In this document: positions 6,401-35,063 of the stretch, piece by piece
How positions within the stretch are numbered: the first letter of the stretch is position 1
Layout of the letters: each line of letters opens with the position of its first letter
Assembly (NCBI GenBank): GCA_010909165.1
Contig: MU008176.1
Location: forward strand, 299,114 to 363,113
Direction: 5' to 3'
Length of the DNA stretch: 64,000 bases
Origin: Anthoceros angustus
Taxonomy: Eukaryota; Plantae; Anthocerotophyta
Made by a program: the position numbers and the translations under genes
The notes under the pieces: generated by a model
Seen by the model: only the letters and a program-made list of their open reading frames with translations
The model's database searches: none
Told to the model about the DNA's origin: nothing

Positions 6401-8530
6401 GGAGGCCACGGCCGCGATCACTATCGGCGTGATCGAACCGTGGAGAGAGGCGCCGAGAGAGCCGCGCCAATCAAGGCCGAGCAAGTGGCGCAGCAAGCCA
6501 GTCGGCCGTGAGGCGGAGGCCGGCACCGGGAGATTGGGGACCCTGTGCACGCAGGAGGTAGAAGGGCGCAGGAGCCGGAGGACAACAAGGACACCTTGGA
6601 GTTGCAACCCAAGATGCACGGAGCAGGGGTTCTCAACGAGAGAATCCAAGACTTCGAGCGAGAGGTGGAACGCCCAGCCCGCTTGAAGACGGAGGAGAAC
6701 AGGCGTGCAAGGAGTTCGACGCGCAAGGTTGCGCAGGACGTGGCGGAAGCTGTGAGCCTGACGGGATACGCCCGCCCGGAGAAGGAAGTGGAGGACCTCC
6801 GGAAAGAATAGAAGAAGGGGAGGAAGGCAATCGGAGGAAAAGGTACCGTCGTCCGGCCAGGAAGCAGAGAGCTCACCATGGCCATGTGAAATCAAGTGAG
6901 TCAAGCAACGACGGAGGAGGAGAACGCCGAGCAGCAGCAAGGTTGCAAGAGGTAACTGAGGCAGCCTTGACGGCCTCAAGGGAGTCCGCCCGCTACAGTA
7001 AGCTTGGCCACGGAGACAAAGCCAAGTGGGCGATCCGCCTGCCACGAGCACCTGAGGAGGGAGTGTGCCCGGCTCATGTGGAGGAGGCGATTCAAAGTCG
7101 ATTCGACCGCTTACTACCACGCAGAGCTCCTCAAGGCCTCGAGGTCCCGCGCCACCCCAGGCAGGAGGGTGGACTTAAGGGATGGAAGGAGGAGCGAGAG
7201 GACGGACCCGGGACAAAGACAACCGCTGGAGTCCTAGGAGCGCCTGCTTGACGAGCAGGCAGCAGGCGAGAGCAGGGAGGAACCGGAGGAGGAAGGCGCC
7301 ACACCGAGGTAAGTTTCAAGACCTCGCATGGAAGGACGAGGGAGGATCTTGAGAGGAAGGAAAGGTGCAACCGGCATTCGGGAACCAAGGGAGGGCTCTG
7401 GATGAACCCGTGACCAGCGAGGAGGCATGCCCAGAGTCGAGGGTCCTGACTTTGTCCTGACTCGAGGAAAGGCCGATCCCGAGGTCCGGAAGTCCGACTT
7501 AGGGATCCAGACTCAGTGACGAGTCCGACCCCGAGGTCCGACCCTGTGGAAGGGTTGGGTCCAAGACCGACCTCAGAGGCCGCCCGGCCCCGAGGACCTG
7601 ACTCAAAGAAGGCCGCCTGTGAGACCGGACCTAGAGGGAAGACTGACCTAGAGGTCCGGACCGAGTCGAGACAGGGTCCCGAGGTCCAAACTCGGGAGTG
7701 GGGAGAGCCACCACCACCAACCCCAGCAGATCCAACTTGAGGGCCCACCGCGCAGGGCCCGCCAGAGAGAGAAGAGGGAGGACGAGAAGACTTGGTGGTG
7801 GCCGTTGTCGAGGCCCGGTGGCTGACAGACCCTCGGGAAGAGGAAGGGTCCGGATCATCCGATTGGCGCGCCGGGCTGTGGCTTGGGCCGTGCCAAGAAG
7901 GAATGAGGGGCTATCCACCCCACCACCGACGGCGCGATAGGTGAATAGGTGGTAGTAGGCGGTTAGGTACCCGAAATGGCCTCACTAATAGAGGTGTAAT
8001 AAAGGCGCCGACCTTCGAGTATAAGAGGGCTAAGGCCGCCTCAATAAATCATCTTTCTCTTGGTGTTGATGCCGCTCTGCACCTTTGTGTGTCTTCTGCT
8101 AACGTGAGTCCCGAGTCACCGAAAGGTGCACGATACCCGGGAGATTGATCGGTCCCGTGACGACCTAACGCGTTGTGGTGTGTGTGGAAGGGTGATCGGT
8201 GACCCGTGTCCCGAGCCGCGCCCAAAGACCGAACGGACCGAACGTGAGCCGGAGGAACTCCGGAGGGCGGCAGAGCCCGGACGGAGAGGCCCGAACGACG
8301 AGGAGGTCCGACTGTAACCCGCGCTGCTTTTCTAAGAGAGGAGTGTAGCGTGAGGGAGAGAGGAAAGGACCGATGTGAGTGACGGATGTGAACGATACGA
8401 CGCGAACGGTCTCAAACGCTTGGCCATACCGGCCTCAGACGGTGAACGCTGGAGTAGTTAGAGTATGTGTGTTGAGATCAACGAGCGCATGCGGTAGGAA
8501 TCACCAAACGCTGTAAACGGAGCCTATCAT
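3411..8530 (+). mobile_element. Unclassified retroelement-like insertion (broken Arg/Glu/Pro-rich and coiled-coil ORFs; LTR-like 3' part)
   Basis: GC-rich and purine-skewed, with fragmented ORFs and no RT, IN or PR motif. The 3' part has TATAAG and AATAAA (~8019-8047) and ends ...GCCTATCA at ~8529. No matching second LTR was found. Confidence 0.35.
4274..5748. repeat. Tandem duplication, ~740 bp unit (4274-5013 / 5014-5748)
   Basis: Both copies start TGGACCTTGAGGTC and share GGATCACCTTGGTGATAATCTATTG and GGGGGCATTTCAACTCCTCGGAAGGAGAGC. They differ by many indels and substitutions. Confidence 0.9.
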
Positions 8531-8544
8531 TCCCTTTGGGAACG

Positions 8545-9142
8545 GACTTCTTCCTACAACGACATCGGATTGCGCGCGCTGGCCATCAGAAAGTCGCGCC
8601 ACATGGACCTATTTTGACTGGAGGGATCGGTTTGATTCTGTCGATGTGGTTGTAACCGATCCCACCGGGAGAAGCGCCTGCGAACATGTTATTCTTAACC
8701 CTCCAGTTGGGCGGGCGGAGGGATGCGCGATGGCTAAGGTCCACAAGTACTCTCCTATGCAGATCCATGCGTCCCTTGCCATTGAGACTCACGGAGCCAT
8801 GGGCAAGGATTTCTCTAGGTTCGCCAAGGCTGCGCCAATGCTTATCATAGCAGCAGAAATGGGGTTGGCCTCCCCTTTCTATTGTTGTTTCTTCCCAGAG
8901 GGTTTCCATCACTCTGCAGAGGGTGTTCAATGCAGATATAGAACGACAGAAAAGTGGGAGATGCGGCTTCGACATCGGTGGTGGGTAGGCCTTTTCACAT
9001 CCCCGACTAGTTCTCACGGGTTGGTAGTTTTGAAATGCGTGATCGTGGGGCTAGTCCCGGCATTGTGCCCTTCGTTGGGTTTTTCCCTTTGTTTTGGGTG
9101 GATTGGTTTTTCCATCTCTTTTTATAATAAGTCTTCTTTCCG
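8545..9142 (+). mobile_element. 3' end of CRE-like LINE: restriction-like endonuclease (RLE) region and 3' UTR
   Basis: DVVVTDPT...AKVHKYSP...LAIETHGAMG...RVSITLQR (frameshifted), followed by a T-rich 3' UTR ending CCATCTCTTTTTATAATAAGTCTTCTTTCCG. Confidence 0.8.
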
Positions 9143-12100
9143 TTTGATAAAGTGACATATTGCCGAGTTGGTTGGAGATGGGTTGGTTAGAGATCATGAT
9201 GACAAAGTTGTGGTAACTCGACGGGGTCCATACGGTTGAATGAAGGTAACGTCTTCAAGAGGAGACTGTCGTTGTGATGCGTCAACTCGCACTTAAGCGT
9301 CCAAGGGGACGAGCTGAGATGGAGCTTGGCGGAGGAGGTGAGATTGGCCCTCCTGTGCAACCGCCAACGGGACGAGGTGAGATTGCCGCTGCTGTGCAAC
9401 CGCCACGTGCACGACTTCAGACTGGCGTCGCTATGCAACCCCAGTGAGCATCCAAGTCCTGATCATACATTGCCCCGTTCCGCGGACCCGTCGATGCAAG
9501 ATATTCATCGTGCCTTTGCAGCAAGGCATAGTTTAGGAGAAGGCGAGGAGAGCTTGCTCATACTTTGCCGACTTCCGCGGATGCATCTGCGGTAGATGTT
9601 CATCGTGCCTTTGAGACAAGACACCATTTGTGAGAATGTAGAGAACTGCTGGCCAAGACGTGGATGAGGAGTTTCTCAAGCAAGCTTGAGTGTCCCATTG
9701 CTTGTGAAGATTTTTGCAGCTCTTGGCCTTCCGCAACTTTCACTTTTGCAGCTCTCAGTTTCTCCATTCCTGTTAGGATTTTGTCTTCACGAGGTGCTCA
9801 GTTCTCATGCATGTCCATAGCTTTGCCGTGAAGGATGGGTGTAAAAGAAACTGTGCTGCTGCAAAAGCGAACTCTTGAACAGTCTTGCAACGTTAATCCA
9901 GTTGTCCGGGAACTTGAACTTCTAGGTCCAGTTACAGCAATTTCTGCTTTTGTTGCTGTTGTCCTTCATACGGTTATTGGCCCTTTTCATTTTAAGGTAG
10001 GCTCCTTGGTGAAGGATACAAACTGCGTTGCCTCTACATACTTGGTCCAATGGGACAGGCTGCAGGTTCTCCTCCGCGGGATTGACTGAGTGTTGTCGGA
10101 ATTGATACAGAGAGAGAAGAGGGAGGACGAGGAAGACTTGGTGGTGATCGCTGTCGCACCGCTGGCACCCTCGGAAGAGGAAGGGTCCTCCGCTGGATCA
10201 TCCGATTGGTGCGTGGCTGTGGCTTGGCCGTGCCAAGAAGGAATGAGGGGCTATCCACCACCCACCACCGCGATAGGTGGAATAGGTGGTAGTAGGCGGC
10301 CGGTTAGGCACCGAAATGGCCCTCAAATAGAGGTGTAATAAAGGCCGACCTTCGGCGAGTATAAGAGGGCTAAGGCCGCCCAATAAATCATCTTTCTTGG
10401 TGTTGATGCCGCTCTGCACCTTTGTGTGTCTTCTAACGTGAGTCCCGAGTCACCGAAAGGTGCACGGCCCCGGGAGATTGACGGTCCCGTGACGACCTAA
10501 CGTGTGTGTGTGTGTGGAAGGGTGATCGGTGACCCGTGCTCCCCGAGCCGCGCCCAAAGACCGAACGGATCGAACGTGTGAGCCGGAGGAACTCCGGAGG
10601 GCGGCAGAGTCTGGACGGAGAGGCCCGAACGACGAGGAGGTCCGGACTGTAACCCGCGCCTTTTCTAAGGTCAAGGAGTGTAGCGTGAGGAGAGAGGAAA
10701 GGACGGATGTGTGAGTGACGGATGTGAACGATACGGACGCGAACGGTCTCAAACGCTTGGCCATACCGGCCCGTGACGGTGAACGCTGGTAGGAGTATGT
10801 GTGTTGAGATCAACGAGCGGTAGGAATCACCAAACGCGGTAAACGGAGCCTATCATTCCCTTGGGAACGGACTTCTTCCTACAACGACACGGATTGTGCG
10901 CCCGGCTGGCCATCGCGAAAGTCGCGCACATACGACCTATTTTGACTGGAGGGATCGGTTTGATTCTTGATGTGGTTGTAACCGATCCCACCCGGGAGAG
11001 CGTCTGCGAACATGTTATTCTTAACCCTCCAGGTTGGGCGAAGTGAGGGATGCGCGATGGCTAAGGTCCACAAGTACTCTCCTATGTGATGCCATGTTTT
11101 CTGTCCCTTGCCATTGAGACTCACGGAGCCATGGGCAAGGATTTCTCTAGGTTCGTCAAGGCCTGCGCCAATGCTTATCATAGCAGCAGAAATGGGGTTG
11201 GCCTCCCCCTTTCTTGTATTGTTGCTTTCTTCCGGCAGAGGGTTTCCATCACTCTGCAGAGGGTGTTGGCTGACGCAGTATATAGAACGACAGCGAGTGC
11301 GGGAGATGCAGCTTCTTCGACATCGGTGGTAAGTAGGCCTTTTCACATCCCTGACCACGAAGTTCTTCGGACGGTTGGTAGTTTTGAAATGCGTGATCGT
11401 GGGGGCTAGTCCCCCTGGCATTGTGCCCTTCGTTGGGTTTTTCCCCTTTGTTTTTGGGTGGATTGGTTTTTCCCATCTCTTTTTTATAATAAGTCTTCTT
11501 TTCCGTTTGATAAAGTGACATATTGCCGAGTTGGTTGGAGATGGGTTGGTTAGAGAGATCATGATGACAAAGTTGTGGTAACTCGACGGGGTCCATACGG
11601 TTGAATGAAGGTAACGTCTTCAAGAGGAGACTGTCGTTGTGATGCGTCAACCGCCACTTAAGCGTCCAAGGGGACGAGCTGAGATGGAGCTTGGCGGAGG
11701 AGGTGAGATTGGCCCTCCTGTGCAACCGCCAACGGGACGAGGTGAGATTGCCGCTGCTGTGCAACCGCCACGTGCACGACTTCAGACTGGCGTCGCTATG
11801 CAACCCCAGTGAGCATCCAAGTCCTGATCATACATTGCCCCGTTCCGCGGACCCGTCGATGCAAGATATTCATCGTGCCTTTGCAGCAAGGCATAGTTTA
11901 GGAGAAGGCGAGGGAGAGCTTGCTCATACTTTGCCGACTTCCGCGGATGCATCTGCGGTAGATGTTCATCGTGCCTTTGAGACAAGACACCATTTGTGAG
12001 AATGTAGAGAACTGCTGGCCAAGACGTGGGGATGAGGAGTTTCTCAAGCAAGCTTGAGTGTCCCATTGCTTGTGAAGATTTTTGCAGCTCTTGGCCTTCC

Positions 12101-13033
12101 GCGCAACTTTCACTTTTTGCAGCTCTCAGTTTCTCCATTCCTGTTAGGATTTTGTCTTCACGAGGTGCTCAGTTCTCATGCATGTCCATAGCTTTGCCGT
12201 GAAGGATGGGTGTAAAAGAAACTGTGCTGCTGCAAAAGCGAACTCTTGAACAGTCTTGCAACGTTAATCCAGTTGTCCGGGAACTTGAACTTCTAGGTCC
12301 AGTTACAGCAATTTCTGCTTTTTGTTGCTGTTGTCCTTCATACGGTTATTGGCCCTTTTCATTTTAAGGTAGGCTCCTTGGTGAAGGATACAAACTGCGT
12401 TGCCTCTACATACTTGGTCCAATGGGACAGGCTGCAGGTTCTCCTCCGCGGGATTGACTGAGTGTTGTCGGAATTGATACATCGCGTCCAGACCAGCTCC
12501 CGGCATACCAAGTCCACAGTGAGCCCTTGATGGTGAGGAGCAGCGAGGGAAATAATCTTAAGTGTCCTCCTCTGTGGCACCTCATCCCAACCTCTCTGCT
12601 CCAGCCATCTTGTCTTGCGGAGACTGACAAAGTCAGCAAAGTGGCGGTGCCTGCTAGAGGAGCACAGCTTACCAAAATTGCCGCTCACCCTCTGTCTGTT
12701 CAGAGCTAAGTCAAGAAAACATCTTGGTTCCCTGCAGAGAGGTTGGGATGAGGTTGTAGGCATACAAAGAGACCACATCCTGATGTCGCTACGCAGACCA
12801 TCCAGAAAAGTGTGTTGGCAGGACAACAAAGATGATGTGCGATCCCATTGGCTTTCCATTTGACCAGACACTAGACATTCGACCTTGCCCAACCCACACA
12901 GCTGATTACCAGCTCCGAAAGAACCTCAAGCAAATGCTGGGCCTGTCTGGTAACGACTTCCTCCGAAAAAATGGTTTTCTAACCAGTGACAGATGCCACG
13001 GGCCGCGGTGCTCGTGATACATATGGAATGTGT
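9143..13033. repeat. Inverted paralog of 43630-45104 plus 46090-46135 (its left part is duplicated by the 2.35 kb tandem repeat)
   Basis: For example CAGCTGATTACCAGCTCCGAAAGAACCTCAAGCAAATGCTGGGCCTGTCT (~12900) is the reverse complement of ~43715-43765. The ORF track gives near-identical peptides on opposite strands (12615..12863+ vs 43799..44071-). Confidence 0.9.
10865..11505 (+). mobile_element. Second copy of the CRE-like RLE 3' end (part of the 2.35 kb duplication)
   Basis: LILDVVVTDPTRESVCEHVILNPP...SLAIETHGAMGKDFSRFVKA...FFRQRVSITLQRVLADAVYR; same 3' UTR as 8545-9142. Confidence 0.8.
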
Positions 13034-13469
13034 GATATGGAATGGACACAGACACGAACTCTATTGGACTCACTGATTCTAGGAGGGTCCTTTTACAATA
13101 TGGCACACCTAGCTCACAAAGGACGATACTTTTCCAGACTTCGCTCTCCCCAGTCATCTAGCTGAAAGATTGCAGCTTGTCCAGGAACAAGCCAACGTAA
13201 GTGACCAGCTTCTTCAGGTAAGTGGATAATGACAACGTTCATATGAACATAAATCCCTGAGGATATCATGGGAGAAGTACTCCTGACCTCCTCCTCAAAT
13301 ACAAGGGAGTCTCTTTCCTCTTCTACCTTCTTCATCTCAACCTGAAGACTCACACTGGTGAAAGGACTGCCAGAGAACTTGCAGGGTCACTTTCATCATA
13401 ACGCGTCTAGTTCGACGGCATGCCACAAATTAAATGGAATGCACGGTCCGCTCTTCTAAATACATTTCA

Positions 13470-13700
13470 TTCTTGTATTCCCTGTCACTACATCTTAGGT
13501 TGCCAATCTATCCAACACGTTGCAAGCATCTGCCAAGTGCCGGACCAAGCTCCGGCACTTGGCATAACTGGACACCAGGGTATTACCCAAGGAGAAAGAA
13601 GCTTCCTCAAGACCTTGCTAGAGAACGTGAGCACGAATCTGCTTGTCTTCCTGCAATGCCCCTATCCCAGCACACAAGCTCAAAGGATAGACACAAATAA
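13470..13700 (-). pseudogene. PLS-PPR relic (L-S-P motif fragment) paralogous to 41715-41940; repeated at ~15260-15490
   Basis: The minus strand reads ...GATAGGGGCATTGCAGGAAGACAAGCAGATTCGTGCTCACGTTCTCTAGCAAGGTCTTGAGGAAGCT...TATGCCAAGTGCCGGAGCTTG, aligning to the intact PPR gene but with in-frame stops and an insertion. Confidence 0.8.
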
Positions 13701-13828
13701 GGAAGCGGGAGTGAGTTCGGCATGCAAAGGTGGCGGACACACATCAGGAGTCCCAACAGTTCTTCGGGTTTGAGTGCCCTCTTCCTCCATATTTTTCACT
13801 AAGCTGGCAAGGACGAGGGCGTACATGG

Positions 13829-14686
13829 TTATTGCAACGTCCGTACATACTGGTCCAAAACACTGTTGAAAAGTTCACACCTGCAATGGCAATCCAGAAG
13901 TCAGTACAAGTAGAAGTGATCAACACGAGAAGTGGGTGTCATACAATCAACGCCTAAAAGAAAAGAAACATCTCAGCCAAATTTATTCCACAGCCAGGCC
14001 ATATTGCAGTGACTCACCTAAAGGGTTGACCAGGCGTATACAAAGGGTTCTTCACCACAAATTCAACGTAAATGTTGCTGTACACGTAGTTCAATGCTTC
14101 TCGCAAATCTCCCATTTTGGGATCCGTGATGAGCACCAACTGCAGATTGCCCATTCAGATTCGCCGCGCTGTTTGATATCGCTCACAAATTGGTGGCACG
14201 CCAGCCCAATCGTAGGCACCCAAACAAAACATAAAAAGAAAGGCAAGGGCAAGGGCAAGGGCAAGGGCAAGGGCAAGGGAAAACCTTGATTCCTGAAGGT
14301 GTCCAGCAGGTGCAGCTTGTACGAGTTAGTCCGAGCTGTGGAACGAGCAAGCTTGGCCAACCAGCTGTGGCGCTCCTAGATTGCCCTTACTCGAGCTGAA
14401 AGGTAGCCGAAACAAAATGGCTTGATCCAACTGCCGACATGCCTCACAGACACACCCTACCCCGGCCTAAGAATTTTGCAAAAGAAACAGCGATGTGGCC
14501 CTGACCTGACTGGATCCATCTTCGCTGTGAAGGACTTGAGTGAAAACAGGAGGCCAAACATGAGCTTCTGGTCCTGCTGCTGACTTAGCGTGGTGAGCGG
14601 TCTCAGCCACATGGTAGTGCATGCACTCCGTTTCTGTTGAAAATGTACAGGCAGCGCATCCGCTGGGTTTGGGACATCCCCAACAT
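13829..14686 (-). pseudogene. BET5: Frameshifted copy of BET5/TRAPPC1
   Basis: Same four exons as 15622-16491, but with two CA deletions in exon 1 and two 2-bp deletions in exon 2. It may be an assembly duplicate. Confidence 0.75.
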
Positions 14687-15621
14687 GGCTTTCCTGCACC
14701 ACGCTCCGAAAGAACCTCAAGCAAATGCTGGGCCTGTCTGGTAACGACTTCCTCCGAAAAAATGGTTTTCTAACCAGTGACAGATGCCACGGGCCGCGGT
14801 GCTCGTGATACATATGGAATGTGTGATATGGAATGGACACAGACACGAACTCTATTGGACTCACTGATTCTAGGAGGGTCCTTTTACAATATGGCACACC
14901 TAGCTCACAAAGGACGATACTTTTCCAGACTTCGCTCTCCCCAGTCATCTAGCTGAAAGATTGCAGCTTGTCCAGGAACAAGCCAACGTAAGTGACCAGC
15001 TTCTTCAGGTAAGTGGATAATGACAACGTTCATATGAACATAAATCCCTGAGGATATCATGGGAGAAGTACTCCTGACCTCCTCCTCAAATACAAGGGAG
15101 TCTCTTTCCTCTTCTACCTTCTTCATCTCAACCTGAAGACTCACACTGGTGAAAGGACTGCCAGAGAACTTGCAGGGTCACTTTCATCATAACGCGTCTA
15201 GTTCGACGGCATGCCACAAATTAAATGGAATGCACGGTCCGCTCTTCTAAATACATTTCATTCTTGTATTCCCTGTCACTACATCTTAGGTTGCCAATCT
15301 ATCCAACACGTTGCAAGCATCTGCCAAGTGCCGGACCAAGCTCCGGCACTTGGCATAACTGGACACCAGGGTATTACCCAAGGAGAAAGAAGCTTCCTCA
15401 AGACCTTGCTAGAGAACGTGAGCACGAATCTGCTTGTCTTCCTGCAATGCCCCTATCCCAGCACACAAGCTCAAAGGATAGACACAAATAAGGAAGCGGG
15501 AGTGAGTTCGGCATGCAAAAGGTGGCGGACACACATCAGGAGTCCCAACAGTTCTTCGGGTTTGAGTGCCCTCTTCCTCCATATTTTTTCACTAAGCTGG
15601 CAAGGACGAGGGCGTACATGG

Positions 15622-16491
15622 TTATTGCAACGTCCGTACATACTGGTCCAAAACACTGTTGAAAAGTTCACACCTGCAATGGCAATCCAGAAGTCAGTAC
15701 AAGTAGAAGTGATCAACACGAGAAGTGGGTGTCATACAATCAACGCCTAAAAGAAAAAGAAACATCTCAGCCAAATTTATTCCACAGCCAGGCCATATTG
15801 CAGTGACTCACCTAAAGGGTTGACCAGGCGTATACAAAGGGTTCTTCACCACAAATTCAACGTAAATGTTGCTGTACACGTAGTTCAATGCTTCTCGCAA
15901 ATCTCCCATTTTGGGATCCGTGATGAGCACCAACTGCAGATTGCCCATTCAGATTCGCCGCGCTGTTTGATATCGCTCACAAATTGGTGGCACGCCAGCC
16001 CAATCGTAGGCACCCAAACAAAACATAAAAAAAGAAAGGCAAGGGCAAGGGCAAGGGCAAGGGCAAGGGCAAGGGGAAAACCTTGATTCCTGAAGGAGTG
16101 TCCAGCAGGTGCAGCTTGTACGAGTTAGTCCGAAAGCTGTGGAACGAGCAAGCTTGGCCAACCAGCTGTGGCGCTCCTAGATTGCCCTTACTCGAGCTGA
16201 AAGGTAGCCGAAACAAAATGGCTTGATCCAACTGCCGACATGCCTCACAGACACACCCTACCCCGGCCTAAGAATTTTGCAAAAGAAACAGCGATGTGGC
16301 CCTGACCTGACTGGATCCATCTTCGCTGTGAAGGACTTGAGTGAAAACAGGAGGCCAAACATGAGCTTCTGGTCCTGCTGCTGACTTAGCGTGGTGAGCG
16401 GTCTCAGCCACACATGGTAGTGCATGCACACTCCGTTTCTGTTGAAAATGTACAGGCAGCGCATCCGCTGGGTTTGGGACATCCCCAACAT
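15622..16491 (-). CDS. BET5: TRAPP complex subunit BET5/TRAPPC1 (157 aa, 4 exons: 16491-16307, 16196-16082, 15933-15812, 15673-15622)
   Basis: The spliced protein is MLGMSQTQRMRCLYIFNRNGVCMHYHVWLRPLTTLSQQQDQKLMFGLLFSLKSFTAKMDPVSSSKGNLGAPQLVGQACSFHSFRTNSYKLHLLDTPSGIKLVLITDPKMGDLREALNYVYSNIYVEFVVKNPLYTPGQPFRCELFNSVLDQYVRTLQ*. All introns are GT-AG and in phase (474 nt), and the sequence matches the plant BET5 signature. Confidence 0.93.
16038..16076 (+). repeat. (AAGGGC)n microsatellite in BET5 intron 2; also at ~14241, ~18518 and ~20047
   Basis: About six units are directly visible. It explains the spurious KGKGKG/ARARAR/LPLPLP ORFs. Confidence 0.95.
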
Positions 16492-16901
16492 GGCTTTCCT
16501 GCACCACGCTCCGAGCTCCTGCCCCCTGTGTGTCACCTGCTGCCCGAGCAGGGCCTGACGCCTGACGATGTAGAACTGAACCGGGATCGGAGTTAACTGA
16601 ACACTAACTGGCGTTAACAAACCGGTGTGGCGGGTTAGCCGATGGAGCTTCTCGTTCTCTCCCGCCATTTTGCGCTTCCGAATTCGCCAAGCCAAGCCCA
16701 GCTCCACCAGATCCAATTCGTGCCAGTGCGCGAATCCGAGGTTGCGTGAATTCCAGAATGTCCCGACGGAGACCCTCAGCTTGCAAGAGCTTGGATTGCC
16801 CAATGAACAGGCGGAACCAGGGAGCGTGATGCTCTGTCCTCCGAGCTCGCAAATTCTGCCTCGACTTTCCGGGTGCAGGTGCACGAGCGCGTTGTGCAGC
16901 G
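16492..16901. promoter_or_regulatory. Putative bidirectional promoter between BET5 and DNA2 (410 bp between start codons)
   Basis: Inferred from divergent ATGs at 16491 (-) and 16902 (+). Confidence 0.6.
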
Positions 16902-18398
16902 ATGCCTCCCAGGAAGGTCGCATTGAAGCGGCAGCACGCTGCGCCTCCGCCGGCTCGGTTCGGGATCCAGCATTTCTTTTCCAAGCATGCTGCGAATTCC
17001 CAGGCTGTGAGGCCCCTAACCGCGCCTCCAGCTCCTGTGGGAGCCAGCAATGCGGTGGCGAGGCACTCGGGGAGCAGGAATGGGGGAGCTGCTGGCGTCC
17101 CACAGCCGGTTGGAACCGCCCACCCAGCTGGTGAGTTGGAATTTTGGTGGGTTTGCCTTGCCGTGGCATGGCATGGGGCATTCTGGTTTGCTTGGGTTGG
17201 GTGTTCTGGTGTGTTTGTGTCCAGTGGAGGAGTCATGTTTGGAGAACGCAGGTTTTAAGCAGAAAGCGGCTGAGGTCAGGGGTGATGATCGTGAACGGGG
17301 AGATGGAATCGGGTGCCCCCAGCTCCAAGCAGGTGCTCGGGAGGGGGGGGATTGGGCTGTCGCCAAGCAATGCGATGCTCCTCCATTCGACACGGCAGGA
17401 TTCGCTTCTTCTGGAGTGTTTGTGCCTGCAGAAGCGACCAGTGGAAGAGGTGATTGTTTGAGGTATTGCAAAGCAGTAATTATGGGCAGGTGTGGAGGAA
17501 GAATCTCATGGCCTTCTTCAGTGGCCGTGCCAGGTCCGGATGTTGCACATGATGTGCTCAATGTGGCTATAACGGAGAAGGATCCCAAGGGTTTCCCAGC
17601 TTCCAACGTCATGCCGCCTCCTGCAGCCGAAGAAGATCATCAAGCGAGACAGGACTCAAGGCCTGCAGCAGAGAGAAAGAAACGACTCAGATATTCACCT
17701 GAGATGGTACGGTGTGCCCAATGCCAGCATTTGCTCGTAGTGGAGTTGGCAGCGGGTGCCTCTGGCTGACGCGAGGTATGTTCCTTCATGTGGTTGGACT
17801 CTGTGACAGGTCATCACGCAGAGTCAAGATGACGGAGGAGATGAAGTAGTGTGGAGGGCGTCTCCAACATCCGATCGTCTGCTTGCAGCGGCCGCAAACC
17901 AACCCTCTGCTTTGATGGGAGGTGAAAGGCCTGCTCTGCGGCCCTGCAATAGTGCTGGAAACACGGGGCCCTCCAGGAATTCCTTGTCAAAGCCACCTCC
18001 ATTGCAGCCAAATCGGTGCGTCTCCCAAGAAGGTGCGCATCGTGTGTTGGCTTTCTAAGCTTTGAAAGCAATGCAATATCATTTGGGTGCGCTCTTTGAG
18101 GTTGAGGTTGCTTGTCTGAGAGCCTTGGCGTGCAGAAATCCCCGGGGATAGCAGGCAAGCTGGAAACTTGGCTGTCATCATCAAACCTGCTGATGATGGT
18201 GCACCTGCAGCATCCAAGTTCTCACTCGCTGGGAATAAGGAGAATATCTCCAGTGCGTGCCCTGCTGAAGGTGTGGAGAAGGACGTAAAGGAGTCTACTG
18301 CAAAGGAGCGTCGTCGAGCTCGCCGCCGTTCTTCCTTCGTAAGTGGGCTATGCACACAAGTTCTCTATGCACATGCTCAGGAATTCCTTCATTTTGGG
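16902..18398 (+). pseudogene. DNA2: 5' part of DNA2/JHS1 (exon 1 16902-17130 and exon 2 from 17225 are in frame; the later part has 1-bp deletions); truncated at a duplication junction
   Basis: [26 protein letters not shown]...RYSPEM|[28 protein letters not shown] resembles the plant DNA2/JHS1 N-terminus. It breaks at CATTTTGGG (18390-18398) into BET5 sequence. Confidence 0.8.
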
Positions 18399-18966
18399 AT
18401 CCGTGATGAGCACCAACTGCAGATTGCCCATTCAGATTCGCCGCGCTGTTTGATATCGCTCACAAATTGGTGGCACGCCAGCCCAATCGTAGGCACCCAA
18501 ACAAAACATAAAAAGAAAGGCAAGGGCAAGGGCAAGGGCAAGGGCAAGGGCAAGGGAAAACCTTGATTCCTGAAGGAGTGTCCAGCAGGTGCAGCTTGCA
18601 GAGTTAGTCCGAGCTGTGGAACGAGCAAGCTTGGCCAACCAGCTGTGGCGCTCCTAGATTGCCCTTACTCGAGCTGAAAGGTAGCCGAAACAAAATGGCT
18701 TGATCCAACTGCCGACATGCCTCACAGACACACCCTACCCCGGCCTAAGAATTTTGCAAAAGAAACAGCGATGTGGCCCTGACCTGACTGGATCCATCTT
18801 CGCTGTGAAGGACTTGAGTGAAAACAGGAGGCCAAACATGAGCTTCTGGTCCTGCTGCTGACTTAGCGTGGTGAGCGGTCTCAGCCACATGGTAGTGCAT
18901 GCACACTCCGTTTCTGTTGAAAATGTACAGGCAGCGCATCCGCTGGGTTTGGGACATCCCCAACAT
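18390..18966 (-). pseudogene. BET5: Third, 3'-truncated and frameshifted BET5 copy
   Basis: Exons 1-2 and part of exon 3 are present with small deletions; exon 4 is absent. Confidence 0.75.
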
Positions 18967-19375
18967 GGCTTTCCTGCACCACGCTCCGAGCTCCTGCCCC
19001 TGTGTGTCACCTGCTGCCCGAGCAGGGCCTGACGCCTGACGATGTAGAACTGAACCGGGATCGGAGTTAACTGAACACTAACTGGCGTTAACAAACCGGT
19101 GTGGCGGGTTAGCCGATGGAGCTTCTCGTTCTCTCCCGCCATTTTGCGCTTCTGAATTCGCCAAGCCAAGCCCAGCTCCACCAGATCCAATTCGTGCCAG
19201 TGCGCGAATCCGAGGTTGCGTGAATTCCAGAATGTCCCGACGGAGACCCTCAGCTTGCAAGAGCTTGGATTGCCCAATGAACAGGCGGAACCAGGGAGCG
19301 TGATGCTCTGTCCTCCGAGCTCGCAAATTCTGCCTCGACTTTCCGGGTGCAGGTGCACGAGCGCGTTGTGCAGCG

Positions 19376-22300
19376 ATGCCTCCAGGAAGGTCGCATTGAA
19401 GCGGCAGCACGCTGCGCCTCCGCCGGCTCGGTTCGGGATCCAGCATTTCTTTTCCAAGCATGCTGCGAATTCCCAGGCTGTGAGGCCCCTAACCGCGCCT
19501 CCAGCTCCTGTGGGAGCCAGCAATGCGGTGGCGAGGCACTGGGGAGCAGGAATGGGGAGCTGCTGGCGTCCCACAGCCGGTTGGAACCGCCCACCCAGCT
19601 GGTGAGTTGGAATTTTGGTGGGTTTGCCTTGCCGTGGCATGGCATGGGGCATTCTGGTTTGCTTGGGTTGGGTGTTCTGGTGTGTTTGTGTCCAGTGGAG
19701 GAGTCATGTTTGGAGAACGCAGGTTTTAAGCAGAAAGCGGCTGAGGTCAGGGGTGATGATCGTGAACGGGGAGATGGAATCGGGTGCCCCCAGCTCCAAG
19801 CAGGTGCTCGGGAGGGGGGGGATTGGGCTGTCGCCAAGCAATGCGATGCTCCTCCATTCGACACGGCAGGATTCGCTTCTTCTGGAGTGTTTGTGCCTGC
19901 AGAAGCGACCAGTGGAAGAGGTGATTGTTTGAGGTATTGCAAAGCAGTAATTATGGGCAGGTGTGGAGGAAGGGGCAACCGGAATGCACTCTAAGACATG
20001 ATTCAAGGAAAAACTCTCTTGCCTTAAAGGCAACTTCAAAGCAGGAAAGGGCAAGGGCAAGGGCAAGGGCAAGGGCAAGGGAAAACCTTGATTCCTGAAG
20101 GTGTGGAGGAAGAATCTCATGGCCTTCTTCAGTGGCCGTGCCAGGTCCGGATGTTGCACATGATGTGCTCAATGTGGCTATAACGGAGAAGGACGTAAAG
20201 GAGTCTACTGCAAAGGAGCGTCGTCGAGCTCGCAAATTCTGCCTCGACTTTCCGGGTGCAGGTGTGGAGGAAGAATCTCATGGCCTTCTTCAGTGGCCGT
20301 GCCAGGTCCGGATGTTGCACATGATGTGCTCAATGTGGCTATAACGGAGAAGGATCCCAAGGGTTTCCCAGCTTCCAACGTCATGCCGCCTCCTGCAGCC
20401 GAAGAAGATCATCAAGCGAGACAGGACTCAAGGCCTGCAGCAGAGAGAAAGAAACGACTCAGATATTCACCTGAGATGGTACGGTGTGCCCAATGCCAGC
20501 ATTTGCTCGTAGTGGAGTTGGCAGCGGGTGCCTCTGGCTGACGCGAGGTATGTTCCTTCATGTGGTTGGACTCTGTGACAGGTCATCACGCAGAGTCAAG
20601 ATGACGGAGGAGATGAAGTAGTGTGGAGGGCGTCTCCAACATCCGATCGTCTGCTTGCAGCGGCCGCAAACCAACCCTCTGCTTTGATGGGAGGTGAAAG
20701 GCCTGCTCTGCGGCCCTGCAATAGTGCTGGAAACACGGGGGCCCTCCAGGAATTCCTTGTCAAAGCCACCTCCATTGCAGCCAAATCGGGTGCGTCTCCC
20801 AAGAAGGTGCGCATCGTGTGTTGGCTTTCTAAGCTTTGAAAGCAATGCAATATCATTTGGGTGCGCTCTTTGAGGTTGAGGTTGCTTGTCTGAGAGCCTT
20901 GGCGTGCAGAAATCCCCGGGGATAGCAGGCAAGCTGGAAACTTGGCTGTCATCATCAAAACCTGCTGATGATGGTGCACCTGCAGCATCCAAGTTCTCAC
21001 TCGCTGGGAATAAGGAGAATATCTCCAGTGCGTGCCCTGCTGAAGGTGTGGAGAAGGACGTAAAGGAGTCTACTGCAAAGGAGCGTCGTCGAGCTCGCCG
21101 CCGTTCTTCCTTCGTAAGTGGGCTATGCACACAAGTTTCTCTATGCACATGCTCAGGAAATTCCCTTCATTTTTGGGCATGAACCATCCTTCCTTCAAAT
21201 TTTCAGGTGTCTTTGGATCGTCCGTTCAAGACAGGAACGAAGAAACAGGCACAGTCCGGGCATAGGCGAAAGGTGCTTTCGTCCCTCCAAATTCTTGCTG
21301 AGAGGATGAAAGGGCTGATTATCGACATCGCCTTTCTTGCTTTTGCCGAAAGTATTTGGCATTGGATGCGGTTATTGACAGGCATCATCTTCCTGTACCA
21401 GGCACTACTGGATCTTTTAGAACAGGTGAAAGATGCGATAGTTGTGGAGGAAGGGCAACCGGAATGCACTCTAAGACATGATTCAAGGAAAAACTCTCTT
21501 GCCTTAAAGGCAACTTCAAAGCAGGAAAGGGCAACTTCAGAGCAGAAACGGTCCACGACCGCAGATTGTTGTGAACAATCGAAGGAAGTGGTAACAAGCC
21601 ATAGCCTGAGGCCGTGTGACAGAGCTCATATTGACTCCGGAGATGGCTCTGGAGTTTGGAAAGGATCTGGAGGTCAAAATCATGTGGTACTTGATGTGGA
21701 AGGATTTATACCGTCAGCTGGCGTTGAATGCTTGGCCACGGATTGTGCCACACTCTGCATTTCAATTGATAAGCCCAGGCGATCAATGGAAGAGAGCAGA
21801 AGGGACGAGGTTTCTCTCGCCACCACAGCAGGACAGAGTAGGAAATGTATTGATGCCACTGATCACATAGCCAAAAGTACTTACCCGGACCTTGAATTGG
21901 CTGAGCTCTCTGATACCGCTGAGCATGATTGGCAAGCAAGCGCACACTTTATTGTTCTGGAGGTGAATCTCAAAACCTGACCCAACTCTGTCTACCTGCT
22001 TCAGGTTTTCATTCGGTCAGGCATTGTCCATGCAATAAGAACTCACCCTTCTGCTGTTATCATGTTCAAAGGTTGCCGAAGGCGAGTTTCAAGAAGAGGG
22101 ACATCCAGGATTGAACGACCAGCAGAAGGTTCTGCTGCACTGCTGTGGGAATTGCATGGATAGTAAAATACAGGAACATGCGCACCTGAAGTTCACCTGT
22201 TTACATGACATCGTTTGGTGCTCGTGCCTGGCCAGGTCTTAAGACTGCTGCAAGAAGGGAGTGGGATGGAGCGTGTGGTGTATCTTCGGGATTCCTGGTG

Positions 22301-25300
22301 AGGTGAATTCTTTCAGGAAGTCGCAGAGAGATCAAAACCAGAAGTGCACTTTGTGTTCACAGCCAGTGGCTTGCAGGGATCAAAGGACTTGAATGATCAG
22401 GAGTAGTCTTCCAGTGTCCCTAATTTTGAGCATGGGCAGGTTCTACTCGACTGTGAAACCAGGCGATACTGTGAATGTAATTGGAGATTTTCAGGAGGAT
22501 GGCAGTTGTGTGATTGATGCGATGAATCACCTTATCGTTGTCCATCCGGACATTCTTGTATCTAGTTCTAGAGTGAGTCTGGACCTCTGCATGTCCCTGG
22601 GTTCCATTATTATGATGCGCGTCATAGGTGGAGTCAATCCTGTTGCTGAAGTTTGGCTCCACCTCGGCAGGTGGGAGCAAGCTTCAGCTGTCCACGACGA
22701 TCTGTGCTGGATGAGCGGATCAAGTCCACTGATGTGTCAATTGCCGCTCTCATGGGTACAATGCTGCATCAGCTCTTTCAGGTACTCCCTTTCACTGTTC
22801 AAGGACCTGACCTGTTTGGTCTGGGAGGCTGTCATTATACTTGTCTGGGATTATGGCAACTTACAGAGGCTTGAGCGTCTGATCCGTGAGAAATCGCAGG
22901 TGGCTTTGCTCTCGCGAACACCTTCGAGGGATTTGCTGGAATCTGAAGCTCAGGCAATTGTGCTGCGGCACATAGATGGCTTATATGCAGCAAATGGTAA
23001 GTTCCAATTCCTCCACATGTCAAATTGTATCGCTATCCCTCTCCCTCTGGCTAGTTGATTGTGTAACTGTGGCTCCATGCTCCAAATGAAAAAAACTTAA
23101 GACATTTGTACGCAGGTAGTCAGAAAGAGGCATACAAGCAGCTCATGGACGCAATCCCAACCATATTGGGCTGGGTGCGTGGTCATATTGTACAAAACGT
23201 ATGTGTTCTATCTCCACTCGGAACCAAGAAATCATGCAGTTTGAGCCCCAGACATCTCAACAAATAATCTGGGTCCTGTAATGTGTGGGTCCAGGTTTCA
23301 GGAGACTTCAATGTTGACAAAAGCCAGGACAAGGCACCATGCGTCGAGGAGGTCAGCTAGCACTTCTGACCAACGTTGATATAACGTAGGGTAATAGCTA
23401 GTGGAGGGAAAGTACAAGGTTCGAGCTCAATTTGAGCACGACTCTTGTCTGCTGCTGAAACGGTGCTCACTAAATGGAATTGTCTCGCACTTCCGCAGGT
23501 GGTAGACATCGAAGAGACAATCTGGTCCCCTATGTATGGCCTGAAAGGCATGATAGATGCTTCGTTAATGGTGCGTGACAGAGCTAGTGCTGATTCACAA
23601 GCCCGTGTTCTGCCATGGGAGCTGAAGACTGGAAAAGGGACCACCGGAATGGTAGGGACAGAGCTGAAACAGTTGCTGCTTAAGACTGAATTTTGCTTGT
23701 AGGTCAGCGAATCAATAGCATCCCCTGTTATCCAAAGGACAAGCTTAACATACGGGGAACTGGCTGTGGCAGGCTGCCATGGAGCATCGTGCACAAGTAT
23801 TTTTATACACCCTGCTTATGTCTGACAGGTTACTTGTCTGGTCATACTCCTTTGATCGCCAATGCTTCAAGCACATTATCAGTCATAAGCTTGTACCGCT
23901 CGTATGTTGGTGTGCAGTAGGAAGCATTCTGAATGTCCTCTTCATATTTGCAGATACAAGGAGGAAGTGAAAGACGGGATGATTTACTATATGCACACTC
24001 GTGAAACCCAGGTACAGATTTCCACTTCATATTAGCAGGGGCTTGCAGCTTACCTCTCTAATCATCTCATTGGCTGCTAATGTTGTTTGCTCCTCGGCAA
24101 GTAGGAGGTTCAAGTGCAGCGTGCGGACATTGTGGGTCTGATGATGCGTCGCAATGAGCATGCAAACAGCTTACTGTCTGCATCTACCACCCAGCTTCTT
24201 CCACCCATGCTTAAGGTAGTCCAGTCTCTTGTCCATGAACTCTTGACATGACCTTCCCAGCCAATAGAAACTTCGTCGAGGGAGATGGACATTGATGTTG
24301 GACCCATACTGTGCTTGTAGAGCGCTCATATGTGCCGAGGCTGTCGTCATCTCGATGTTTGCAACGTGTACCACAAAGTATTCTTGCTCAACCCTTCCCG
24401 CCTCTTCTTATGGATCTAGCCCTCTCTAGTTCGATTCTACGCTTTGTCTCTGTCGCTGATATTAGTAATCCATCCGTTCCACAGGTGAATGAAGGAGGCT
24501 CACCTGAGAGCAGTGGCCTTGGGGACTTATTTCATGACCTCACTGGCCATCTCAGTACCAGCCATGCGGAGTTTCTTCAGCAATGGGATCGTCTGATAGA
24601 TCTTGAAGCTCAGGACATGCAGGTCCTGTGGCTTGAAATGGTTTAAGTAGTTATCACCAGCCTCAGCGCTCCAATGCTGATGGGTCCTACCGATGTGTTG
24701 GATTCTACTTGCAGGTGTCTCACAGGGAGATCTGGAGAATGAGCAGCAAGAAAAGAGAGCTACATGGTCGCTGTCTTTCATCCTTGATCATTTACATGAC
24801 ATCTGGGCATCCGGAAACACAGGATGCTAAGAGTGACAGGCACACGTATTGCTTTCGACGGACAAATTGGCCTGACAGCCAGGGTGTAGGTCTCAACACT
24901 GCAGGCAGCTTCCTAGACCGTCCATTCTCTTCTGGAGACTTTGTGGTAACGTCTGATTGTCTTTTGTAAAGCAGCCTGTGGACCATTCAATTGTGTAGAT
25001 AAACGAGTTGTGGACGCACCATGGTGTTAATCCACCACATGTTTGCACATCAGATTTTAAGTACAGAAAGTGGACACACCGCTGTTGCAGCAGGAGTCAT
25101 CACCAGCATCACTAAAGACTCTCTACAAGTGAGTTCCTGGTTTCTGTTGACTAAAATATTCCACTGACGGTTTCATTCTGCCATGCTGGAGCGCAGTCTC
25201 TAACGCCTGCATCTTCAAGTATTCCAGCTATCTTTATCACGCCGGCTACGGTTGCCGAGCAAGCCTGGGATGCTAGATGCCGACAGGCTAAGTCAGGAAG

Positions 25301-28270
25301 TATGGCGTATCGACAAGGATGAAACAGCCTCCTCGGTGGCACTCATGAGGTGTTTAGCTCAACACCTTGCATCGACTTGGGTGATTGCATGTGGACAAGC
25401 ACCTTTCGGGGTACTGCATGCTGACCATGCAAGGACTGGACAGTACTCAAATCTCAGAGCATGTGATTACAATGGTGTGTCCTGGTCTATCTAAGCTGAA
25501 AAGTCCTTTTGTCAGGTATAATCTGCTGCAGCTATTCATCAAGCAGTCTGGAAATGAGAACCACAGGCAACTGATTGTCGACTTGGAGGTATGCCTTGGT
25601 TGAAGTGAACGTGAAGCTGGTTTCCATATGTCATCACACTTCGCTTCCAGATCAAAGTTTGGATTAGCAAGTCGATACGATTCTTAACAGGCCCCAAGGT
25701 TCGAGTCAGGAGCACTCAGCAGTCAGGACCCTGCAAGCCTTTATGTGAGATGTGCTTCGGGTTTGAATGATGATCAGAGGAAAGCTATTCATAAGGTTTG
25801 TTGGTGATGGGGTACCAGATTCAGTCAGGCAAGCCTTGGTATACCTCATGTTTGACAGCAGATGCTTGTCCTACTCTTGACAGATTTTGGCTGCAAGGGA
25901 CTATGCACTGGTACTAGGAATGCCTGGAACAGGGAAGACGTCGCTTATTGTTCATGCAGTCAAAGCCCTTCTCACCCGTGGATGCTCCATCTTGCTAACT
26001 TCATACACGAACTCAGCAGTGGACAACATCCTGTTGAAGTTGAAGGCGGAGGTCTCTGTTCCTATCTCTACCCAAGTTTCCAACGGCCTTTGAACAAATC
26101 GTGTCTGCTTATCTGGACAATACGTTGTATTTGAGGATGCTAGCCAACCGAAGCGCCTTCGTGTGTCACTTGCAGGGGGTGGATTTCATCCGTGTTGGAC
26201 GCAACGAAGCCATTCATCCTGAGTTGCGGAAGCACGCCTTAAGTGGTGCAGGTCTGATTTTGTGCAGTCAGTATCCTTGAAATGTCTGTCACCACACTCT
26301 TGTTTTCTGAAGTGGTTTCTGGTGGAAACAGATGGTCATGTAGCACCTGTGGAAGAGCTAGATGCTAAGGTTCAGCGAGCTCAAGTTGTTGGGGCTACCT
26401 GTCTTGGCATCACGCATGCTTTGTTTTCAAAGCGGAAATTTGATGTGTGTATCGTCGATGAGGCTGGACAAATAACACTTCCTGTACGTACAAAAGGTCT
26501 CCTCCCTTTATGGTATTGGCAATTGGTGTGTCATGATATGGATCCCTGATCTCTGCGGCCGCAGGTGTGCCTTGGACCTCTGCGTTCTGCTAGCAAGTTT
26601 GTGCTTGTTGGTGATCATTATCAGCTGCCTCCTTTAGTTCGGGTACCTTTCCCTGCTTGTCTGCGTTCCCCTTCGTTGTCCTCGAGTTTCAGCAGCTTGG
26701 CGGCTGTGTCAGCCTGCTTGCAGTGGCCGTGCTAAATGAAATACGTTTGACAGAACTCGGAGGCTCGGGAAAAGGGCATGGCTATCAGCCTGTTTCGAAG
26801 GCTCTCTGAAGCCCAGCCTCAGTCTGTGTACGCTCTTCAAAGCCAGGTGACAGTGGTTGATTTGAGTATTCAAGCAACAAAGATGCTCTTTCTTCAGACC
26901 CTTTCGCTTAATTAGTACTGAAGCAAGATAGGCCTTTGTACAGGCATATGCTGATGAGAAAGCATCGACATTTGCAGTATCGCATGTGTGCAGACATCAT
27001 GGCTCTGTGCAATGCTCTAATTTATGGAAACAGGTTGAGATGCGGATCAACTGAAGTAGCGAGTGCCCAGCTAAACCTGCAGAAAAACTACGCAGATAAC
27101 TGCCACCCATGGCTAGCTGAGGTGCAATTTGTGCTGGCCTTGTCAAGTTTCACTGAGGAACTTCCTCTGCTCCCTGCCTGGACATGGATAGATTGTGTGC
27201 CTAAGACAAGGGTGGTGGTTTCAGGTGCTGGACCCTGCGCGCCGAGTTCTCTTTCTAGACACAGGTAGGAAGAAAATCGTCCAGCTCATTGATGATTTTT
27301 GTCTTCTCCAGCATCTTCAATGCAAGCATGTCAGCAATAATGCATCCCAAAAGAGCAAGGCTGCATGAAACTTGATTCATGAGTTCAAGCGCTGGTGGTC
27401 TGTTACAGACGCTCTGGCTGCAGAGGAAACACGAATGCGGAAGGCGGTGCATAATGTGGGTGAATCGTCGCTGGTAGTGAAGGTGAGGTCCCCAGAGCAG
27501 GAAAAGCATAAAGGCGTCAGCAGAGACAGCAACAAAGCTGACATGTGATCCAACTGTTTACAGGTTACCAAAGGTTTGATTTCGGCTGGCATTTCCATAC
27601 AAGACATCGGTGTGATCAGCCCATACAATGCTCAGGTGGACACCATCCGTCGCATGGCATCCGAAGCAGGCCTCCCTTCCCTGGAAGTGCACACCGTGGA
27701 CAAATACCAGGTGGGTGGTGGCAGAACACGGAGACAAATAGCCTGCCTGGATGGTTTGTGGGCGGAGGAAGCAAAGCCTGACCAGGGCCAGTGTGGGTGT
27801 GTGGGTGTGGCAGGGCCGAGACAAGGAGTGCATCTTTGTGTCTTTTGTCAGGTCGCATGCCTCCTGTGGCGGAGCAAATCCCGGCTCCCTGCTCGCAGAT
27901 TGGCACCGCATTAATGTGGCCATCACACGGGCCAAGGTAGCGATCCAGCAACGTCTCATCTTTTTGATCATGTTGCTTTTCTCCTAATCCTCCTGACGTG
28001 GAAGCTTTCTCCTGTCTCTTCCTTTCTCCGGTTCTCATGAGCAGAAAAAGCTGATCATGCTGGGGTCTCAAAGGACGCTGTCATCCACACCCTTGTTGAG
28101 TCTTCTCATCCGCCAGGTGAGCAGGCAGACCCAGGCCCAGGCCCAGGCCCAGGCCCAGGCCGGGTCATGTGCCGATGCTGATGCTTTTGGATAAAACGTC
28201 TGAGCCGCATTGAAACTGGCAGGTGAGGCATCTCGGAGGCCTGGTGGAACTCCCTCCCGGCATCCCTTAA
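19376..28270 (+). CDS. DNA2: DNA replication helicase/nuclease DNA2 (JHS1 homolog), multi-exon. As assembled, the 5' end is frameshifted and interrupted at 19963-20264; the body from 20265 appears intact
   Basis: Motifs seen: [12 protein letters not shown] (Fe-S Cys), [19 protein letters not shown] and PWELKTGK (nuclease), [26 protein letters not shown] (Walker A), [40 protein letters not shown]|[14 protein letters not shown]|KKLIMLGSQ. The predicted last exon is 28223-28270 ([15 protein letters not shown]). Confidence 0.93.
28130..28159. repeat. (CCCAGG)5 microsatellite in the last DNA2 intron
   Basis: Directly visible. Confidence 0.9.
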
Positions 28271-33545: not shown

Positions 33546-35063
33546 TCAATGAAAGTGATAGATGAAGTGCAAAGAGATCCTGTATGTATCTAAGTCCGAA
33601 ATGACAAACCGAAAGGCAGATGCTAAAGGTAAGACTAAAACTCATTGCATTTAACGGAAAGGCATGGAGAGGCGAGGGTCATAAAGCGGGCAAGGGCGTG
33701 CCTCGGTTTCAAATTCCCTCCCAAAATACGAACTTTGAATGCTCGCGGCCCCACCTTTAACGGGATGGATTCACACGTTCCGTTGCGCAACTGGCAAACT
33801 TTGGCTGCCATTCTAGAACATCCCTCCCCGGTTTGCGCATTTAGGTGAACGTTAAAGGCAAGCGCAAGGAATAAAGCATTGTTGGTTCCCGAGACGGAAG
33901 CAGCCCGCCCCTTGTTTTTCTCTGACGCCACCCACCCAGCCTCCCTGGGACATGAAACCACCTCGTAACCCGACCCGACCCGGCCTCGAAGAAGGAAGTC
34001 GTCCGGGCCTGGAGTGACGGCAAGCGTCAAAACCACGCAGAAGGAGAAGCAGAAGAAGACTCTAGCCCCAGACGAGACGAGAGCCAAAACGGAGCAGGCA
34101 ACGCGAAGGCAAAGGCGAACGCTCTCCTGCCTGCGGGTCCCTGCCACAACCAGCCAGCCGCTCCAGCCAGCGCGCCATTCATCGGCCATGGCGGATGCTC
34201 GCCTCCGGGTGCCCAGCTGCTGCCGCTTGTCTTCGTCGTCCCCCGCTTCCCTGCGCTCGCCCCCGCTCTGTTGCTGATATTTGCGGTGCGTGCTCGTGCG
34301 GTGCTCGGGAGCGGGGTTGAGTCAGGAGCGGCCGGCTTGCCGGTCTTGGACGGGCGTCCCGGCTCCTCGTCCTCCTCTGCTGCTGCACAGGTTGCCCTCG
34401 GGTGGAGCAGGATTTTGGAGATCCCGAGGTGTCTGGGAGGTGAGGCCCGGGCCGCCGCCGGGGTGGAACCAATTCCGCTCACCAGTTGAGATTGTCTGTT
34501 GCCAAGCTTGGCGCAGCTGCGGCAAGTCGGGGAGGAAGGGGGGGTTGAGGAAAGGGAAGGAGGGATTGGAGCGCGGGAGGATTGCTGCTGCGATGGGAGT
34601 TAGGGTATGATGCAGATTGGAGGACTGGCTCCTTGGTCGGAGGTTTCGGATGTGCACTGATGGCAGGTTTGCAGAGGCGTTTGTGATTCTAGACCGAGCT
34701 TGTAATTTCAACTACTGTGGTGCCGCCCTGGGGTTCCGTAGGGATGACGGGGGTACGTGCGCCGTCGCTGGGGTAGAAGGTCATGGCCTTGAGTGCTGCC
34801 ATTTCTGCTGCGGGTGAGGGTTTGTGGTGTGTGCATCGCATGGCTGGAGTCGGCTGCTGCCGTAGATTGAGGCGGCCGTGTGTTTGTCTAACTTGGCCTG
34901 ATCGCCGTGTTGCGCAGCCTTGATGTCCTCAAGCTGGAAGAGTTGGTTCGGAACGTAGAGCTGCGGCGCAGGGTGTAGCAATTTCAGGTCTGGTTTGTTC
35001 GAGCTTGGGCGGGGTGTTGGTTGCCGCACATGTGCTAGGTTTGGTTTTTCCACACTTCCGACC

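Follow-up and report, generated by a model that had tools for sequence, protein, structure and literature searches.

A patchwork insert among nested tandem duplications at the BET5-DNA2 locus of Anthoceros angustus that may well be a low-support aberrant molecule or assembly path

The BET5-DNA2 locus in the 64-kb stretch of Anthoceros angustus DNA analysed here (the window) carries a 285-nt patchwork of exact copies of nearby sequence, set among two tandem duplications that are themselves joined on short matches. The distribution of small errors in the assembled sequence suggests that this nest is an aberrant molecule or assembly path of low support and not fixed germline sequence, a reading to which we assign a probability of roughly 57%. 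The chaining of templated copies at microhomologies, which the original prediction took as the signature of template switching, is borne out far beyond chance and is unrelated to splicing. The rare germline record that it considered as one of two origins finds no support in the internal evidence: the mosaic lies in contraction-bearing blocks, the surroundings of the junctions are laden with errors and the clean path through the locus skips the mosaic.

A maximal-exact-match walk over 19940-20290 resolved the interval 19973-20257 (285 nt) into a chain of five exact local copies of 92, 58, 95, 49 and 40 nt, reproducing within 1 nt the five fragments that had been predicted; their donors, predicted to lie on the same strand within a few kb, are indeed all on the plus strand and 0.6-3.9 kb from the insert. 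The host sequence, which corresponds to 17469-17501, stops at 19972 and resumes at 20258, the equivalent of 17486. Fragment 1 (19962-20054, plus strand, as are all five) is a copy of 21443-21534, DNA2 N-terminal exon sequence, entered through the 11 nt TGTGGAGGAAG and differing from its donor by a single extra G within a G-run at 19973. Fragment 2 (20047-20104), entered through AAGGGCAA (8 nt), equals 14245-14302, also matches 16037-16100 and 18518-18580, and consists of (AAGGGC)5 and 20 nt of the antisense edge of BET5 exon 2. Fragment 3 (20099-20193) copies 17488-17582 and 20260-20354, the latter adjoining the insertion site on the right, and can be entered through AGGTGT (6 nt), through AGG (3 nt) or over a bridge at 18265. 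Fragment 4 (20185-20233) copies 18275-18323 and 21050-21098, in a DNA2 N-terminal exon, with GGAGAAGGA (9 nt) as its entry, and fragment 5 (20225-20264) copies 16842-16881 and 19316-19355, in the DNA2 5' leader, with CGAGCTCGC (9 nt) as its entry and GCAGGTG (7 nt) as the return to the host. Owing to the duplication of the region, most of the donors occur two or three times. In net terms the insert adds 301 nt, with the 16-nt direct repeat GCAGGTGTGGAGGAAG on both flanks and zero host bases lost.

The overlaps at the six joins are, in order, 11, 8, 6 (or 3), 9, 9 and 7 nt. Random junctions drawn within the same 8.7 kb have a mean overlap of 0.68 nt, with P(>=6) = 0.0018 and P(>=7) = 0.0005, and thus six such joins are not attributable to chance. 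The predicted microhomologies therefore hold as a set, with a reservation for the join between fragments 2 and 3: the AGG(TGT) proposed there reaches 6 nt only if BET5 copy I, with its probable 2-nt error at this very place, is taken as the donor, and shrinks to 3 nt (AGG) against copies II and III, unless the join is read as a two-step switch through CTGAAGGTGTGGAG at 18265, with overlaps of 7 and 10 nt. No inverted repeat of near-identical sequence turned up anywhere in the 64 kb by self-BLAST at a word size of 20. Three words within 4 kb (17488-17501, 18268-18281 and 21443-21453) share, almost letter for letter, the form (A)GGTGTGGAG(G)AAG, and most of the switches begin or land on them; this recurring purine-rich word may make the spot slip-prone, in the cell or in the tube. 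Another landing site is the (AAGGGC)5-6 microsatellite of BET5 intron 2 (GCCCTT on the gene strand), found at 16037-16075 and also at 14239-14280 and 18516-18556.

Comparison of the window with itself revealed a setting that the original prediction missed, namely that the host of the patchwork lies inside nested tandem duplications: a 2.5-kb tandem duplication, of which it forms the second copy, adjoins another of 1.8 kb. Between 12908 and 21177 a unit of about 3.7 kb, which we denote X-Y-Z, has grown to 8.3 kb, with X-Y (12908-14709) repeated at 14698-16514 and Y-Z (15907-18398) repeated at 18390-21177, the second Y-Z copy being the one that carries the insert. The first junction (J1, 14698-14709) falls on ACCA(C)GCTCCGA, an overlap of 7 nt if exact and of 11-12 nt if one indel is allowed, and the second (J2, 18390-18398) on the 9 nt CATTTTGGG. 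Since J1 and J2 also lie on short matches, the whole of 12908-21177 amounts to a single nest of switches, eight or nine in number, all short-range and on the same strand. The left edge of this young duplication (12908) is inside one copy of a dispersed repeat of about 1.5 kb and about 90% identity (9191-10109, 11556-13033 and, inverted, 43632-45104), which is probably a transposable element.

Two genes lie head to head at the locus, BET5/TRAPPC1 (Sybindin, PF04099) on the minus strand and DNA2 on the plus strand. In Pfam searches by reference, exon by exon, the DNA2 exons with matches to Dna2 (PF08696), AAA_11 and AAA_12 occupy 22393-27984 (plus strand), outside the rearranged zone, and the first Pfam-recognisable Dna2 exon begins at about 22420. 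The N-terminal exons of DNA2 are at about 20880-21113 and 21183-21977, and its start codon is likely the one at 16902. With a start at 16902 and exons from about 20880, the insert falls inside the DNA2 transcription unit, and it is in this sense that the original prediction was right to place the patchwork inside DNA2.

Between the duplicated blocks we count 24 gap events of 1-2 nt but only 2 substitutions, both at CpG; in the other tandem duplications of the window the scored differences are mostly substitutions. The gap events fall mostly in homopolymer and dinucleotide runs (e.g. A7 to A5, G4 to G3, (CA)3 to (CA)2, A3 to A1), and within each block every contraction is on one side, with 10 of 10 in 12908-14709, 9 of 9 in 18390-19956 and 5 of 5 in 17486-18398, a one-sidedness with P of about 5e-7 if errors hit either copy at random. 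The contractions divide the plus strand of the locus into two contracted blocks and the two halves of a clean path. The first contracted block (12908-14697) is the extra copy I of X-Y, holds a BET5 copy with frameshifts and has all 10 contractions relative to copy II (14698-16514). The second (17486-20257) comprises the right part of Z copy 1, J2, the truncated BET5 copy III, a frameshifted second DNA2 exon 1 and the 285-nt mosaic, and has all 14 contractions relative to its twins. The left half of the clean path (14698-17485) contains BET5 copy II with intact exons on the minus strand, the shared promoter region and DNA2 exon 1, with its ATG at 16902; the right half (20258-21177), the right part of the second Z copy, runs on into unique DNA2 sequence. 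When unit Y is compared three ways, copy II is longer at every site, and copies I and III have 4 identical contractions in common, indicating systematic read errors.

Wherever a reading frame allows a verdict, namely in the BET5 exons, at the DNA2 start and in the exon at 20880-21179, it shows the longer state to be correct. BET5 exons 1-2 give a single-frame alignment in copy II alone, the DNA2 start MPPRK at 16902 is in frame only in that first copy, and the frame of the exon at 20880-21179 is open further upstream in the clean copy only.

The interpretation also draws on where the uncorrected contractions lie, since both large junctions have some of them less than a read length away. Two (14607, 14623) are 75-91 nt from J1, further ones (18360 and three in 18383-18389), four of them within 30 nt, are 1-38 nt from J2, and another (18509) is 111 nt past J2. 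Reads that span real unique junctions would map uniquely and repair the errors nearby, given how aligners and polishers behave, and the persistence of errors beside J1 and J2 thus suggests that accurate or deep data do not cross these junctions and the contracted blocks. The one-sided errors likewise point to low read support for the extra copies, and low support in turn to sequence that would not be fixed in the germline of the plant. When both contracted blocks are removed, 14698-17485 and the sequence from 20258 onward form one collinear single-copy locus, and reads from such a locus would pass over precisely 12908-14697 and 17486-20257, in two gaps. The extra copies are near-identical to their neighbours but of lower consensus quality, the combination by which false duplications in assemblies are recognised. 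Two other sources of one-sided errors were considered and set aside. Copy-specific DNA methylation does not fit, since 0 of the 24 contractions overlap CWG, as against 11 of 20 deletions in a tandem array at 52.6 kb where that error type is clear. The idea that short reads polish only near unique anchors, with the duplication itself real, fails on a clean copy II that is distant from anchors and on junction-adjacent sites that are contracted.

We therefore favour a model in which the mosaic and the two tandem duplications would together make up a nest in which a polymerase switched templates eight or nine times, always on the same strand and over a short range, the growing 3' end re-priming at each switch on a match of 7-12 nt within about 4 kb. 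Its carrier in the assembly would be a path with poor support, most likely a single aberrant long-read molecule or a few of them, synthesised perhaps by a polymerase in vitro, perhaps in some rare somatic cell, and the data of accurate consensus would follow the single-copy locus from the left flank through 14698-17485 to 20258 onward, without the mosaic. Between the two origins offered by the original prediction, the internal error pattern makes the assembler or library chimera the more likely, although it is unproven. Some observations run against such a low-support origin. With 2-3 indels over its 285 nt, the patchwork matches its donors at about 99%, which is better than a single raw nanopore read of older chemistry would give and would require several reads or an accurate one. 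To its left, 409 nt are error-free, which has a chance of about 0.1 and is what one expects from polishing anchored on a real mosaic. In addition, PCR-free long-read libraries are reported to produce artefacts of the ligation, follow-on and fold-back kinds, not microhomology chains (10.64898/2026.06.24.734375). If the nest is an artefact, then the assembly holds false extras, two BET5 copies and a second DNA2 5' end, as well as chimeric inserts, and it offers a signature that can be read without reads (zero substitutions, one-sided homopolymer contractions, uncorrected errors beside junctions), with which similar mosaics in the genome could be screened before biology is built on them.

A possible but doubtful alternative is that the rearrangement is real, fixed and very recent in the germline, with one or a few serial replication slippage or MMBIR-type events having made both the duplications and the five-piece insert, and with the differences between copies being sequencing errors that polishing could not clear from identical repeats. 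The near absence of errors in the mosaic and in its clean left flank would follow naturally, the junction overlaps of 7-12 nt are far above chance, and the combination of local donors with copy-number gain is that of replicative template switching (PMC2621351). Five other tandem duplications are present in the window, of which the older-looking one at 48777/49232 has an exact junction overlap of 9 nt, CTCCATAGC; its 18 scored substitutions suggest a real, older event, and such joins may well arise in vivo here. Neither BET5 nor DNA2 need be inactivated, as the duplicate could be skipped by splicing from the exons of copy 1 straight to the unique ones. An argument against the structure from the essential nature of DNA2 in a haploid plant was dropped, as splicing could still yield a normal mRNA from the structure as assembled. 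Uniform read support, however, predicts errors on both copies or errors cleaned near the junctions, and what we see are errors that are one-sided block by block and packed beside J1 and J2, with the clean copy (II) the one far from unique anchors. The overlaps, none of them shorter than 7 nt on a two-step reading of the join between fragments 2 and 3, also exceed those reported in vivo, and the joins are all in the same orientation. Nor is there a graded series of ages, the substitutions amounting to 0.05% in these copies and to a scored value of about 3% or more in the other duplications. Should the rearrangement nevertheless be real, it would be a rare base-resolved record of multi-step template switching in the germline of a non-seed plant and, taken together with similar candidate mosaics elsewhere in the genome, would indicate that replication or repair works in an unusual way in the lineage.

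A broader version of this alternative, which we hold to be unlikely and slightly more so than the single germline event, is that the nest is real and part of an ongoing, genome-wide process in this seedless plant, in which replication or repair synthesis would switch templates in a distinct, direct-only mode with unusually long microhomologies, the matches being of 7-12 nt and a few kb apart. Young tandem duplications and multi-piece inserts would then mostly be lost before they gain substitutions, and the process would shape gene neighbourhoods. A purely computational origin, in which a consensus or correction step working on a local graph of small k jumps at shared words of about 7 nt or more, appears improbable: each junction does have an exact overlap of at least 7 nt (three or four of exactly 7), the joins are all on the same strand and within a few kb, and fragment 2 matches copy I exactly through the probable 2-nt error of that copy, but the overlaps vary from 7 to 12 nt and are not of fixed length, the match through the error is equally explained by the join with fragment 3, and no specific tool is known to us that would bring in pieces lying 4 kb away.

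Among known systems, the nearest fit at the level of sequence would be same-strand serial slippage or template switching. Template switching is recognised by at least two junctions in cis that join copied sequence, of which there are here six in the insert plus J1 and J2, and by microhomology beyond chance, which here is 6-12 nt against a mean of 0.68 nt. The nest resembles FoSTeS/MMBIR (PMC2621351; PMC13065848) in its serial templated segments, its microhomology joins, its gain in copy number and its return to the original template, but it differs in being confined to the same strand and to within 4 kb, with overlaps of 7-12 nt, and in being known from assembled sequence alone. Published in vivo events extend to distant loci; in mitotic MM-BIR of human cells the copied pieces come from many loci and in either orientation, and the median overlap is 3 bp (PMC13065848). 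Serial replication slippage, as named in PMC3597517, is a second relative. It shares with the nest the same-strand forward and backward slips between nearby short direct repeats that give rise to duplications and templated inserts. The usual scale of such slippage is tens of bases, whereas here the pieces are 40-95 nt long, the jumps reach 3.9 kb and the duplications are of kilobase size.

Polymerase-theta filler is usually shorter than about 50 nt, with overlaps of 1-6 nt and flanking deletions. The filler DNA of plant break repair and T-DNA junctions (PMC8395108, PMC10923293) is like our mosaic a patchwork of nearby templated pieces, but we reject polymerase-theta templated insertion for an insert of 301 nt net, with pieces of 40-95 nt, donors up to 3.9 kb away, overlaps of 7-11 nt and no base lost. 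The chimeras formed by phi29 in multiple displacement amplification (MDA) are similar to the nest in being multi-level, with local partners and short overlaps (partners 0-10 kb away, overlaps ranging over 3-30 nt and peaking at 5-8 nt; PMC4595205; 10.1101/2022.08.13.503872). They are 85-90% inverted, with a direct to inverted ratio of 1:9 (same sources), and none of the eight or nine joins here is inverted, which rules out this origin on orientation. Splicing, a processed retrocopy and template switching by reverse transcriptase are also excluded, as the ends of the pieces lie off splice sites and intergenic DNA is part of the kilobase duplications; the end of fragment 4 falls 15 nt short of its GTAAGT donor, and fragment 2 is antisense BET5 intron plus exon edge. 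False duplications in assemblies (PMC9516828) share the near-identical adjacent copies, one of lower consensus quality, and the false gene copies, here BET5 I and III, but differ in that the causes commonly given (uncollapsed haplotypes and sequencing errors) leave no chains of microhomology joins.

Searches for copies of the locus elsewhere returned related sequences from other organisms. For BET5 exons only other species were found, a Sphagnum-like sequence among them at 96% protein identity, and four metagenome loci (L001-L004) are about 79% identical in exons, with no alignment outside the exons. Eight ORFs, four of them touching the mosaic, had no exact match in the protein collection, nor did a word search of that collection match the 239-aa ORF across the insertion site. 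Elsewhere in the window, 41062-43419 (plus strand) is an uninterrupted PPR ORF of 785 aa, whose best relatives, annotated DYW (PF14432), come from a lycophyte, a fern, a gymnosperm and other contigs; these are only about 40-52% identical, and hence the species and its close relatives are absent from the protein collection.

The density of tandem duplications is unusually high for 64 kb. Four further ones, of 0.46-2.4 kb and 86-93% identity, lie at 7763-12481, 4274-5745, 48777-49723 and 55003-57822, and apart from the one at 48777/49232 their junction overlaps are 0-2 nt. At 52619-55242 a unit of about 885 nt stands in three tandem copies, with long identical stretches and in each copy a patch of small deletions. 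The deletions that remove the middle base or bases of CAG/CTG, the 11 of 20 mentioned above, compare with a background of 6%, and CAG/CTG is a context of CHG methylation in plants; from their sequence context the deletions look like methylation-induced long-read errors, in which case the identity of 92-93% would overstate the age of the array. Finally, an open frame of 671 aa with ankyrin-like sequence is present at 34959-36971 on the plus strand.
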